A stretch of DNA of 48,970 nt from Perkinsus chesapeaki ATCC PRA-425 (GCA_013115145.1 JAAPAO010000236.1:1-48970); one strand, 5' to 3'. Shown: positions 23,301 through 46,100, numbered from the stretch's first letter. Notes: generated by a model not told the origin, from the sequence alone. Made by a program: numbers and translations.

Positions 23301-25240
23301 TTACACAGCAATGACGTTATTATTAACTATTGATGATGACCATCGACCAGTTGTAGCAGGAACTCCTTCCGTGATGGGGAGTCTATTATTGTCAGTGCCA
23401 GTTTCCAAGTCAACAACAGCAGCAGCAGCATCACCACATAGAGACGATTCCGAACGCTTTACAGGAACGCCTGTCGTCACTCTAAGAGAATCGTTGGTTT
23501 CAGTACCCTCAGTAACTGCACCGTCTACAGGTCCCATCTGTCCCTGAAGCAAAAGATGATATCATGTGCATGCGTGCTAATAATACCACGAGCGTAGTTA
23601 TAATAGTTAAGCGAACAACTCAAGTTGGTGGGTTGAGGAGTAGATCTCACAGAGCCTTGATTCATTATGTAGGCACTCCATGAACAACATTGAGTTTATA
23701 AGTGAACACTTAACAACAACGGCAATACAAATTTATACTATTTTTCCATCAGAAAATACCCCAGCTTACCTCTGAGAATGACGGGGCAATTACCAACGCA
23801 TTTGTGCCAGATAGTTTCTTGTATAAAAATATAGACAGGATAGTAAGAACCTAACATACATCATCAACGAACAAGGTGATATCGAACATAATGCTTTGAG
23901 TATACAAATTAATAGCAACATGCTGAGGAGGACTCAAGTTTATAACATCTTAACAGCAGCAGCTCCTTGCGCTGTCGAAACCCCTATCAACCAAATTGCT
24001 CAGGATTTTCGATAAATCACTACTGGTACATTACTTTGTTGCCTTGCGATTCAATTCTCTTATCTGTTAAAGGTTACCCGAGGGGAAGTATATTTTCGAG
24101 CGGCATTTCTCGCGCGCCCCCGCCCCCACCGCCGTCAGCTTACAACGTGTATTATGATAGCAAGTCCCATAATAACACTGTAAATGACCAAAGTCTGATT
24201 TCGGTAATCAACAATGTTGCTAGTCTTCCAGTATTGATACGACGCATAACTTTGACAATCGAAACTGAAACAACAGCAACAACAATCGATCACGTGATCG
24301 ATTATTATGACAGCAGCTTACTCAGGATGGGGTACTGCTGGGACGATAGCTCCGTTATCGTTCGTGCATTGTTCAAGGAACAACTCACAATGATCCAAAT
24401 AGTTTACAATCTGATTATACAAAAAAACCACGCTCCGCTCCGCCTGCCGCAGTTGCTCCTTTTCCGATGATATAATATCGACATATTATTCATAAGGATA
24501 CTGCCTCCACAGGTCACTCCACAAGTTAACTCACCGAAGAGCGATATAATGTTGTGTACCCAAACACGGAGCTAACTGGGTTTAACGAGATCATTCTTGA
24601 AGAGAATAAAGTACATAAGTCCCTACTTTGAGTACATTACTCATACCTTGTACTTATATCACTTCATGCTCTATTACTATATAAGGGAAAATATTATACC
24701 ACAACCAACGCCTTGGCGAACACCGTTACAATGCGATAGTCTATTTTAATTAATACCATATTTCCTCCAAATCTCACCTGCCAGATGCCTATTGCTTGTA
24801 GTATTGCTAGTGCTACATTGCAGGCTGAATAAAGCTCCAATGCACCACTCTTATTATATTGAACACCGTAATAAAGAGCAGCTGGAGCTAGAATAGTTGC
24901 AACGAACACTACATAGTACCTAGAGAATCTTAGCTTGAAGCAGGTAAGATACATAATAGCTCACTCACCAGAAGAAAACAGGCGTTCCCACAGTGAGTGT
25001 CACAGCTGCAAAGACCGCGACCAATACGATCGGGGCCAGGGCAAGGATAAAGATAGCACGAATTATTGGGGCCAATTCAGGCTTTGCTACAGGTAAGCCA
25101 AACCTGAGCTCAAGATACGCCCTATACGCTAAGTTTATCCCAACTTACACAATACGTGGGTGAAATCTAACACCAACAACTGTGGATGGTTGAGAGGTAT
25201 CTTCCGTCGAGTTGGATGGTTGTGACGTAATAAGAGGCAT
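23301..25240 (-). CDS. Multi-pass (~4 TM) membrane protein, paralog 2
   Basis: MPLITSQPSN...RFHPRIV|FGLPVAKPELAPIIRAIFILALAPIVLVAVFAAVTLTVGTPVFFW|YYVVFVATILAPAALYYGVQYNKSGALELYSACNVALAILQAIG ... IVNYLDHCELFLEQC ... last exon EGTETNDSLRVTTGVPV, stop at 23301. Confidence 0.7.
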
Positions 25241-25531
25241 AAAGTATATGAATGCTAACAGTCACTGCGCCACATAATTATCATGATAAACACAACAACG
25301 GTGGTGATGAGTTGGAGAAGGCCGATGCTCCACGAGGGGAGCTGCTGCTGCTGCCGGTGGCGGACTACTAACGTGTATATCTTGTCGATTGCTATTTACA
25401 AAACCAAAACTCGTCAAAATCCGACCCATATTAAAATAGGAAGTACAGAGAATTATAAGCAATCGATCACGCGATCGATTCGACAGCCCCTCGTCTATAT
25501 TCAAAATTGCTGTCGAAGCATACCATTAAGT

Positions 25532-43100: not shown

Positions 43101-46100
43101 AGATAAGACTGACACAAGGATCGGGGATGGCGCGCCATGAGAGGGACGCTAAAAAGGGAAATATTGAGTGAGATGATTCACGTCATCACATGAGGTTGGT
43201 TAAGTTGGTATCTTTAGGGTTGAACGAGAGCATGCTGTCGATGATCTACATAGGGTTTTACTGTGTCGTGATCCATTCTCCACCGACTCAAAGGAGTCTG
43301 ACATCTTGCCCTTGGAACCTCATCAAAGGAATAATGGCAACTGCGAGTCGTTCTCGTCAGCTGATGAGTAAGGGACCTGTCGGGATCGATCTTGGGGGTG
43401 AATTTGTCGGAGAACAGATATGTGAAGTGGTTCCGTCCAGCACTCCTATTCGAGGCAGCTGAAGGGCTTCGTCGATCCCTCTCGACTACCGAGGGAAGCA
43501 GTGTCTACTGGGGCATACCATCGCTCAAAATTAGTCGATCGAGCCGCAAAGGAAAGTGGGCAACGTAAGCCGCATCATCGGAAATTATTATTACTTGTGG
43601 TTTTCAGGCTCACAGTGAAGTCTCAGATTGATGAGAGTTCTGGTAGGGAGACGATTGCTGGGGCACGCCCGCAGCAGAAGTCGGGGAGGCGAGTCGAGGC
43701 CCTAAGCCAAGGAGATCTGGTAAGCAGCTAACCGTTTCGCATAGGAATTTGTTTGAGTCCCCTCACGTACGGTACGCGGCTTATTGACAAATGCGCGGCC
43801 TGGACGGGCAAATATATCGATGAGTAACGCGAATTTCATGCTAAGTTCTTTCCATTAAATTCTACATACTCGATTACCGACGAGATTTCCCCGCTCTAAC
43901 TGTTAGTGCGGGGGAAGCTCGACTCGGGTTAGAGTCTAACTCGACAAAAGGATTTCTACCCATTTTTCGCACTCTTGAGTGGCGAGACTAAGTGTAAAAG
44001 CTCAGGGCTTCCGTATCCGTCAGGCTTAGGACCTTACACCGTTGTTTTGGTTCCCTGTATCATTCAGGTGTTGCTCGTGCGCTCTGAAGTAGCCGACTCA
44101 CCTTCCTTAGTCTATGATCAACTACTCAATGGTGTACCACTAACCCATCTCAGCCCCACTGTCCGTCAAGGCACATCTATAGCCTTTGGTTTGGTCTTTA
44201 AGGATGATGCTGATAGACGCGGGAATGAGGATGAAGGCGGCGGGCGAGGTGGCAAGTTCAGAAGTGCACGAATTAAAATACCCTTCGAATCGGATGAGGT
44301 ATCTTAATCAACAGTTACCATCTCCAATTGATCCATTCAGGCCCCCTATGGTTTATCTCCTCAATCACCATGGGCAGTGGATTCCTTTTGTCAGGCTGTC
44401 GTCCTTGGCAGCGCCACTACACCGGAAAGAGAGTGTGAGGGCTTGGACTGGATCCTTACTAACAGCACTTTTTCACCTCTGCGAGATCTCCTCATTTCGC
44501 CATCTGTGCCAGTACTGAGGCCCTCTGTTGGTCAAGAAGTTGCGGTGGGTGACTTGAATGCAGCGCAGGCCAGAGCTGTCAGGAGTGCAGCAGATATCTC
44601 CTCGCCGATCACACTAGTGCAGGGCCCTCCAGGAACGGGCAAGACCAAGACCATTGTGGGCATGGTCAAGGCGTTGCTTGAGAAATCAATCAAGCTAGTG
44701 ATTTGCGCGCCATCAAATGCGGCAGTTGACGAATTGGCGTCGAGAATCCTTCATAGTTCGCTTCCTCCTGATAAAGATCCGCCTGGGACGTACAGTGTTG
44801 TAAGGGTCGGATCATATAGGCGAATTACTCGTGACGAGGTGAGGGCGGTTTCGGTGGAGGAGCTGGCGAAGGCTGGTGGGCGGGACAAAGCAGTGGAGTT
44901 GAAGGACTCTCATCGAGAGAAAAGGGCTGCAATTCTAATGGAGATAAGAAAGTTAGATGAAAATATAAGAGAGCTCTCTGGCGATAACGACGCAGAAGTC
45001 CGGGAAGATCGGGGTAGACTCATTGCGAGGAAGAAGGAATTGAAGGAGCAGTTGGATAAGCTGAAGGAGCGATCTTCGCGAGCTCTCTCTCGATCGCGGG
45101 ATGAAGCCTTGAAGCATCTGCTCGGCCAAGCAAAAGTGGTTCTCGGTACACTGAGTTCCTTTGGTAGCTCCGCCATTGTAAGCAATTTCATGGCGCGCGA
45201 AGCCACGTGTATAATCGACGAGGCATGTCAAGCTATCGAGCCTTCTGCCTTGATACCATTGAAGCTTCGAGGTGTTAAGCGGCTAATAATGGTCGGCGAT
45301 CCACAACAGTTACCAGCCACAGTGATGTCAGCGGAGGCGAAGGCGTTGCGATACGAACGATCGCTCTTTGAGAGGTTGGTGAGCGCTGGTTGGCAAGCTC
45401 ATCTGCTGGACGAGCAATACCGGATGTTACCGGAAATTGCCGACTTTGCATCGAAGGAGTTTTACGAAGGGCGGCTCAGGACAGCTCCGACGTGCCGGTT
45501 CCCTTCCTCCTTTGGTGTCCCACTGCGACCGCTTCTTTTCCTTGACGCTCGATTTGGTGGAGAGGAACGAGCTCGTGGTGGAACGTCATTAGTAAACATC
45601 CAAGAAGCTGGTATAGTTAATAAGCTAATTGATAGCATGAGAAGTAGGAAGAAGATGTCTATAGGAGTTGTGACACCATACAGGCAGCAGGCAATGCTTA
45701 TTAGGAATATGGTCTCTAATGGAGCAGATCTTGTTGATACTGTTGATGCTTATCAAGGCCAAGAAAAAGATATAATTATAATGTCGTGCGTGCGCAGCAG
45801 TCGCGATGGTGGCATAGGTTTTGTGGCGGATTATCGGAGGCTGAATGTCTCTTTGACTCGTGCTAAATACGCGTTGTGGATCGTTGGTAACGCAGAGAGC
45901 CTCGGGCGATCATCAAAGGTTTGGGCGGATCTCATACAACACTGCAAAGACGTCGGAGCCCTAGTGGATGCTCGAAGACTGGACAAAAGGACTCGCTATA
46001 CGGCGAGTGAAGAACGCCCTCTCGCGGAGATTCTCGAGCTGTGTAACACCACAAATACTGTCCAGTCCCCCCAACTGATGACTGACAATAAGAGAATGCG

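Follow-up and report, generated by a model that had tools for sequence, protein, structure and literature searches.

The closest described counterparts of the sequences considered here are introners and introns derived from miniature inverted-repeat transposable elements (MITEs), in which short near-identical elements, often with terminal inverted repeats, lie in introns of unrelated genes and can supply splice sites (PMC9860276, PMC12130899). In Amoebophrya, an alveolate related to Perkinsus, introner elements have inverted repeats of 8-20 nt at the intron ends and direct repeats of 3-5 nt over the exon borders, and many introns of that kind are non-canonical and strain-specific (Farhat et al., 2021, PMC7789003). 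Perkinsus was included in the dataset of the introner survey of Gozashti et al. (2022, PMC9860276; 2025, PMC12130899), and its name does not occur in the available parts of the table of introner-bearing species. Here we describe a family of imperfect palindromes of about 28 nt, with arms GTATCTT and AAGATAC, in 48,970 nt of DNA from Perkinsus chesapeaki ATCC PRA-425 (GCA_013115145.1, JAAPAO010000236.1:1-48970; this whole stretch is called the window below); we found no description of such a family in Perkinsus in the searchable literature. Like the Amoebophrya elements, the palindromes occur in repeated introns of a related alveolate, can form hairpins from inverted repeats, encode no transposase and overlap splice sites, and they share with introners and MITE-derived introns in general the near-identity of copies in unrelated genes. 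Unlike the Amoebophrya elements, however, the Perkinsus hairpin is 28 nt long, lies anywhere within a GT-AG intron of 47-50 nt, is not accompanied by direct repeats and is conserved between deeply diverged species; and whereas introners come in recent bursts, with presence/absence differences and often with target-site duplications, we found none of these here, the copies being old and constrained. Known hairpin-bearing repeated introns are young, selfish introners, and here a comparable cassette has stayed constant across lineages whose silent sites are saturated. That the palindrome is old, abundant and maintained, with its GT and AG opportunistically used as splice sites, is the descriptive and well-supported part of our account. 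With moderate confidence, we further propose that this multi-copy family belongs to RNA that is spliced out, is kept by purifying selection and acts as a stem-loop in the pre-mRNA.

The palindrome occurs far more often than chance would allow. An exact search of the window for GTATCTT and AAGATAC separated by 5-30 nt gave three matches against 0.01 expected, and the arm word itself (GTATCTT/AAGATAC, 39 occurrences) is the commonest 7-mer; lone GTATCTT words, outside palindromes, are biased towards the sense strand. A covariance model trained on 11 aligned copies, five from the window and six from relatives, detected six 28-nt loci at E<0.01, at 27973, 32232, 24925, 26102, 31677 and, as a new copy, 32659; the long-loop copy at 31963 had E=0.26. 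All the copies found by the model are on the minus strand between 24.9 and 32.7 kb. The six full copies are spread over four neighbouring genes. Introns 3, 5 and 7 of a lectin gene, an exon of which has its best protein match in P. marinus ATCC 50983, contain a copy apiece. Full copies in the window are found only in introns or at a trans-splice acceptor, with none in coding exons, and in the approximately 85 kb of Perkinsus DNA that we examined in total (the window and four further loci) there are none in intergenic spacers or coding exons. In an independent DNA run from the same organism (X2), depth is about 45 on either side of copy a but reaches 305 on the copy itself, and contigs break into unrelated sequence at 32222/32226 (six each) and at 32258/32259 (six and 11); on one such foreign contig, matches to copy b and to copy a are separated by 20 other letters. 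The depth jump and the contig breaks together show that numerous further near-identical copies lie in other parts of the genome. Metagenome and viral collections scanned for the 28-nt pattern (22 specified bases) contained no match, and an extra protein search for further lineages at copy e yielded no candidates.

Contigs from two RNA runs of the same organism, aligned to window positions 29169-34508, define thirteen GT-AG introns, three of which hold full copies (a, f and b), all in the lectin gene on the minus strand. The introns of copies c, d and e were placed by reading frame and P. marinus exon structure, and their boundaries are accordingly given as predictions. Over seven copies, the arms serve as donor in two (a and f, where the intron starts at the G of GTATCTT), as probable acceptor in one (c), as trans-splice acceptor in one (at 32680) and as neither in three (b, d and e). 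For copy c, the AG within the right arm (CCTAAG, then ATAC) would be the acceptor, leaving the last 4 nt of the arm in the exon; it is the sole frame-consistent acceptor, the join yields a continuous L17-like protein, and P. marinus uses an identical AG followed by ATAC. RNA contigs also have ...ACCGTAGCCATCTTGGCTCA joined to the 5' ends of genes, a sequence that we take to be the perkinsid spliced leader, and the contig at the lectin 5' end continues in spliced-leader letters from position 32680. Here the terminal AG of the left arm of the copy at 32659, which was outside the training set of the model, is the spliced-leader acceptor, such that GTATCTAG lies in the outron and the remainder in the 5' untranslated region (UTR). 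The habitat of the family is tiny introns and the edge between outron and 5' UTR, in either orientation, and the arms, as donor, acceptor and spliced-leader acceptor, provide a concrete case of a repeated element and splice sites swapping roles. Spliced-leader addition sites, seen as loose ends of RNA contigs, lie at 32678-32680 (minus strand, lectin) and at approximately 33022-33026 (plus strand, ribosomal protein S30), the two genes being divergently arranged; one RNA contig has TATCTTTT directly upstream of the leader sequence.

Eleven copies are exactly 28 nt long, with a fixed interior of 14 nt, AGGTTSAAC+ATGC, between the arms and with TATCTT...GAT invariant across the alignment. Two arrangements occur, each being, as DNA, the reverse complement of the other: type B, which reads GTATCTT-A-GGTTSRACC-ATGC-AAGATAC on the sense strand, comprises copies a and b and their orthologues, and type A, GTATCTT-GCAY-core-T-AAGATAC, comprises copies c, d and e, their orthologues, and a copy at position 3277 of a relative's contig (L004). 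The core is itself near-palindromic (GSTTSAASC). All five window cores read CTTCAA in the sense strand, a convergence that could reflect selection at the RNA level, but with too few informative bases for us to count it as evidence. The position of the hairpin within the intron is variable: over three lineages, its distance from the donor ranges from 0 to 33 nt, and relative to the acceptor it lies anywhere between 33 nt before and 4 nt past. These observations bear out much of a preliminary description of the cassette, which had reported a palindrome with inverted arms of 6-7 bp, six near-complete copies within short introns (of 47-50 nt, as we find, three from RNA and three from reading frame) and left arms that begin introns 32213-32259 and 31949-31998, with which the RNA joints agree. 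Its statement that the flanks are inverted while the core keeps its orientation describes the pair at 27973 and 32232 correctly, but depends on three S positions of the near-palindromic core; in P. marinus, the interiors of type A (AGTGAACC) are the plain complement of those of type B (GGTTCRAC), such that the two forms are simple reverse complements. Three partial copies had also been listed: that at 30391 is a left half in an intron, that at 33562 is a left half only, and that at 43208..43235 (+) we reject as a family member, since it is coding sequence with a chance resemblance to the left half; its open frame has a counterpart in L004 9150-9200 that is conserved at the protein level (I-F/V-R-V-E-R-E-H-A-V-D-D-L-H).

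The age of the family can be judged from loci of relatives. From 33300 to 20300 on the minus strand, the window and P. marinus contig GG673601.1 (L001) are collinear at the level of single exons; from 33200 to 46000 on the plus strand the window is collinear with L004, a P. marinus-like Logan contig; and the lectin gene is covered by L003, from a third, deeply diverged Perkinsus lineage. At four-fold degenerate sites the window is 39% identical to L001 (218 sites), 27.8% to L004 (205 sites) and 44.5% to L003 (110 sites); neutral divergence between these lineages is saturated. Nonetheless, all six hairpin introns exist in P. marinus, and five of them (a, b, c, d and e) have kept the hairpin. 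At copy f, P. marinus has only GTAGGTTGGAAGATAC, matching the opposite strand of the window interior, while L003 retains copy a, has a decayed copy b, and has intron 31949-31998 without hairpin f; hence only the hairpin of f is specific to the P. chesapeaki lineage, its intron being shared with both relatives. We compared orthologous introns by local alignment against shuffles, having dropped global alignment because its cheap gaps inflated flank identity. For introns a-e, z lay between 5 and 11 and the conserved block fell on the hairpin or beside it (in copy c, where the part downstream is exon, the block reaches into that part), as against -1.3 to 1.6 for six introns without a shared motif, that is, motif-free or with a motif in the window only. 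Given that the orthologous introns in relatives carry the hairpin, introns and hairpins are older than the split; and given that the arms are invariant while neutral sites are saturated, the family appears to be under purifying selection. The elements thus predate the split, and either purifying selection or a homogenisation that still goes on has kept them.

How could an arm come to be a splice site? In L003, the exon before intron a is followed by GTAA-GTATCTTAGGTTCGACATGGCAAGATAC, and in P. marinus by GTAGGATGGGA-GTATCTTATGTTCGACATTGCAAGATAC; in both, the hairpin stands behind an ordinary donor, 3-11 nt downstream of it in the sister lineages. The spliceosome uses the GT of the left arm or the AG of the right arm where either is suitably placed. 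We suggest, from the three lineages, that the donor in the arm may have arisen when the 3-11 nt that set the hairpin apart from the ancestral donor were lost (GTAA-GTATCTT to GTATCTT). The least certain step is what the element does in the transcript: a stem-loop of 7-9 bp (predicted at -5 to -10 kcal/mol) might be read in the pre-mRNA, by sequence, by a factor, and would assist in the marking or processing of outrons and of introns as short as these. We favour an RNA stem-loop because full copies are restricted to introns and outrons, because the arm word is biased towards the sense strand and because U.G variants occur among the arms. In each of the six window introns, the predicted minimum-free-energy fold includes the hairpin (whole introns, -4.6 to -13.6 kcal/mol), with only introns a and f clearly more stable than shuffles.

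Several observations weigh against this explanation. Of the stem cells in the 11 copies, 93.5% are paired; a double change (ATATCTT/AAGATAT) occurs once, U.G pairs number two, and five cells are unpaired, among them those of the AAGATTC variant. The pairing score is reached by 114 of 500 shuffles as well; the arms hardly vary, leaving the comparison without power. There is no real covariation, and the AAGATTC variant recurs three times uncompensated. Both arms are constrained as sequence; the stem is a prediction, and a constraint on sequence alone would fit a DNA-binding site equally. A donor buried in a stem should hinder U1 binding. Tandem arrays of half units in two spacers of this genome only (Table 1) show amplification at the DNA level, copies f (P. 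marinus and L003) and b (L003) have decayed, such that the constraint is not absolute, and the evidence base is about 85 kb, with introns c, d and e taken from reading frame rather than RNA. A broader possibility, which we consider rather unlikely, is that Perkinsus introns of about 50 nt and outrons are recognised in part through lineage-specific, sequence-defined stem-loop modules, the hairpin being one such module that began as the smallest known introner, with GT...AG on both strands. The B-box-like and GCGCGCC motifs may be further modules of this kind. The conservation of the hairpins points to functional signals, other than the splice sites, in the tiny introns of this parasite of oysters and clams.

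Table 1. Palindrome copies, their degenerate and partial relatives, and related tandem arrays in the window. Introns of copies c, d and e are predicted placements.
Feature	Position (strand)	Form	Setting	Junctions and other details	Model score	Counterparts
Copy a	32232..32259 (-)	type B, GTATCTT-A-core-ATGC-AAGATAC	5' end of intron 32213-32259 (47 nt)	arm GT is donor; RNA joint 32210/32258 cut+2 (X6, X7, X10)	34.8 bits	L001 10171-10198; L003 790-817
Copy f	31963..31998 (-)	22-nt loop	5' end of intron 31949-31998 (50 nt)	arm GT is donor; RNA joint 31948/31999
Copy b	31677..31704 (-)	type B, arms ATATCTT/AGGATAC	intron 31660-31707 (48 nt)	donor GTA 3 nt upstream of arm (GTA, then ATATCTT); RNA joint 31657/31706 cut+2		L001 10910-10937
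Copy c	27973..28000 (-)	type A, GTATCTT-GCAT-core-T-AAGATAC	intron 27977-28025 (49 nt), mitochondrial-type ribosomal protein L17 gene	putative acceptor in right arm	36.5 bits
Copy d	26102..26129 (-)	type A, arms ATATCTT/AAGATAT with compensation	3' end of intron 26099-26146 (48 nt)	CAG directly after; phase-0 join between tblastx exons		L001 14810-14837; L002
Copy e	24925..24952 (-)	type A, right arm AAGATTC	intron 24920-24968 (49 nt)	putative donor GTGAGT 16 nt upstream (frame analysis against P. marinus)		L001 16245-16272
New copy	32659..32686 (-)	arms GTATCTA/TGGATAC, core GCTTCGACC	over spliced-leader acceptor of lectin gene		23.1 bits, E=0.006	L001 9709-9739 (homologous element)
Degenerate	30056..30107 (-)	GTATCTT donor, right arm AAGAATT, 19-nt loop	whole intron	RNA joint		P. 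marinus orthologue retains GTATCTTT...GCACAGTGAAGATTT
Degenerate	32400..32445 (-)	GTAGAATCTT ... GCATGGTTCAACC, without right arm	whole intron			not conserved in P. marinus
Partial	30391..30409 (-)	left arm and AGG, without right arm	near 3' end of 600-nt intron 30361-30960	intron confirmed by RNA
Partial	33562..33589 (+)	left half only, GTATCTTTAGGTTGAG...	ends 7 nt before acceptor CAG and 11 nt before start codon of plus-strand gene; probably outron or 5' UTR intron	RNA depth ~0		nothing similar in syntenic locus L004
Tandem array	26635..26892 (-)	~10 units of 25 nt, each GTATCTT and AGGTTAACC (core-like palindrome)	spacer between L17 gene and next gene	TRF score 376		absent from P. marinus spacer
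Tandem array	28966..29200 (-)	31-nt unit with GGTATCTTTTT, left arm alone	spacer upstream of L17 gene	encloses N gap 29071-29168		P. marinus spacer without array

Two runs of N interrupt this part of the window and look like collapsed repeats in non-coding DNA: one lies within the 31-nt array upstream of the L17 gene, and the other (34509-34605) has a 45-nt tandem array on its left flank. Exon order and strand on either side of both gaps are those of the P. marinus loci, and no motif copy is affected by either gap.

The alternative that survives best, one that we regard as possible though clearly less probable than a selected stem-loop, is that the palindrome was a 28-nt mobile element, an ancient introner or MITE, that inserted into genes before the split and gave rise to these introns by pairing one of its own splice sites with a nearby cryptic site, leaving copies that are now fixed and partly exapted. 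The arms contain both GT and AG, each used in different copies; a palindrome offers the same splice sites in either orientation, and both orientations occur; there are many near-identical genomic copies, including two only 20 nt apart on one foreign contig; copies are clustered in four adjacent genes; paralogous genes have different motif cassettes at a homologous intron position; and copy f is apparently specific to this lineage. There is also the precedent of inverted-repeat introner elements in the related Amoebophrya (PMC7789003). The preliminary description had read an intron that begins exactly at the left arm as the hallmark of an intron-creating insertion. Comparison with the relatives does not sustain that reading: the orthologues carry the hairpin behind ordinary donors, all six introns are present in P. 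marinus, and we found no empty orthologous site. In the flanks of the 11 copies we saw no shared direct repeats or target-site duplications, traces that may have vanished from copies of such age. A longer element with the same termini, which the preliminary description had suggested seeking, was not seen in the ~85 kb, nor in the metagenome and viral scans, which sought the 28-nt pattern itself and could have revealed only further copies with their surroundings. A Pfam scan of open reading frames at approximately 33.4-37.7 kb revealed no transposase, only a dual-specificity phosphatase. Moreover, relics of insertions that predate the split should decay like the surrounding intron, and the arms are invariant instead. 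Thus, of the features by which introners are recognised, we see repeated copies and the supply of splice sites, but neither target-site duplication nor recent gain. A looser analogy is with bacterial REP elements, abundant palindromes of about 30 nt, restricted to transcribed non-coding DNA, that occur in both orientations and are sometimes clustered; these belong to a different domain of life and share no sequence with the Perkinsus family, for which we know of no RAYT-like transposase, nor did we seek one.

A serious rival, despite being in our view rather unlikely, is a site that functions as DNA: inverted half-sites TATCTT/AAGATA with a fixed 14-bp spacing, bound by a dimeric DNA-binding protein such as a transcription, chromatin or domesticated-transposase factor, with introns serving merely as the available non-coding DNA of a compact genome. 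Conservation of the arms as sequence without covariation is what such a site would show, as are the fixed spacing in 11 copies, the irrelevance of orientation to transcription (the P. marinus interiors being true reverse complements) and the free position within the intron. One copy lies at the 5' end of a gene, half-site arrays lie in spacers upstream of genes, and other conserved intron motifs of the window, the B-box-like motif and GCGCGCCACGAAATT, resemble protein sites. Against this reading, there is no full copy in an intergenic spacer in either species, and copies lie deep within gene bodies, as in lectin introns 3, 5 and 7. Lone GTATCTT words are strongly sense-biased, and two arm variants pair only as U.G in the transcribed strand, both of which fit a stem-loop in RNA better than a binding site in DNA.

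We consider it very unlikely that the palindrome is the relic of a tRNA gene, its arms derived from the acceptor stem and its interior from a T arm (GGTTCGA) or D arm that has decayed. Genes for tRNA are numerous in P. marinus and are targets of Dada transposons (PMC3706591). Copies in L003 and P. marinus have the interior GGTTCGAC or TGTTCGAC, which resembles a B box; that of copy f, read antisense, is similar to a D arm (GTTGGATTGAG); and true tRNA-tail introns exist in the window, at approximately 39884-39919 and 41625-41695. Nonetheless, a permissive Rfam scan of 23000-34400 (E up to 10) gave no tRNA match on any copy and ARAGORN found only a tRNA-Gly, and on these blank results we reject a tRNA origin. 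In addition, no T-stem pairing can be drawn, GGTTCGA is present in only some copies, several interiors have G at the invariant C56 position, and no T-run follows the element. With the tRNA-tail introns of the same window the family has in common the setting in tiny introns and a short motif that is conserved between species in an otherwise saturated intron; it differs from them in its palindromic arms, its lack of detectable tRNA similarity and its lack of a T-run. Those two introns, in a plus-strand gene, consist mostly of tRNA sequence: one has a T arm and acceptor strand, with an L004 orthologue that has a perfect T arm and a T-run, and the other has a near-complete D arm and a T arm. In L004, a decayed tRNA gene with a T-run occupies one intron (2990-3075) and a full hairpin copy the next (3277-3304); the window orthologue of the latter intron is much longer and keeps only TTATCTTGCAC.

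[quoted passage not shown] The 5' splice site consensus of U12-type introns is RTATCCTT, with a branch site TCCTTRAC 10-20 nt upstream of the acceptor. That the motif represents variant U12-like signals, with GTATCTT/ATATCTT resembling RTATCCTT and CTTCAAC resembling the branch site TCCTTAAC, we consider scarcely credible and reject: the motif is one deletion and one insertion from consensus and occurs at three of 13 RNA-confirmed donors, but GTATCTT is one C short, the arm is off the donor in most copies, no motif like a branch site is common to the introns with a GTATCTT donor at 10-20 nt from their acceptors, the donors of the orthologues are GTAAGT or GTAGGA, Rfam finds no small nuclear RNA in the window and four loci, and a survey across eukaryotes did not find minor introns in Alveolata (PMC10639083).

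Other introns of the window contain two further repeated motifs. One, GCGGAKCGAAGCG(A/T)TTCATGTT with a T-run, resembles a B box plus a terminator; it occurs in introns 29825-29873, 26289-26339 and 27739-27885 (5' part), and is retained in the orthologous P. marinus introns (z of approximately 10-11). The other, GCGCGCCAC/GGAAATT, occurs in introns 29930-29975, 30186-30233, 27218-27258 and 25960-26009 (antisense), and at the 3' ends of introns 31052-31434 and 28151-28684; of those compared, only 25960-26009 has it in common with P. marinus, and in 27218-27258 and 30186-30233 it is found in this genome alone. A tandem pair of paralogous genes for membrane proteins, at 26480-25541 and 25200-23400, has the B-box-like motif in one and hairpin e in the other at the homologous intron position, such that the motif cassettes differ between paralogues. 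Seven scars of 22 nt, composed of W1-7, the reverse complement of W, and W2-8, lie at 14294, 14975, 15576, 46331, 47682, 47911 and 48142, against none in five shuffles; no scar coincides with a palindrome copy, and we reject a link between the palindrome and these hairpin-excision scars. The same runs contain a second version of the genes at 29700-33300, about 10% diverged, which may be a haplotype or a recent duplicate and in which the same introns are spliced. Lastly, DNA depth at 29347-29524 is approximately 1536 against about 45, with contig breaks at 29468, marking a high-copy repeat beside an exon.

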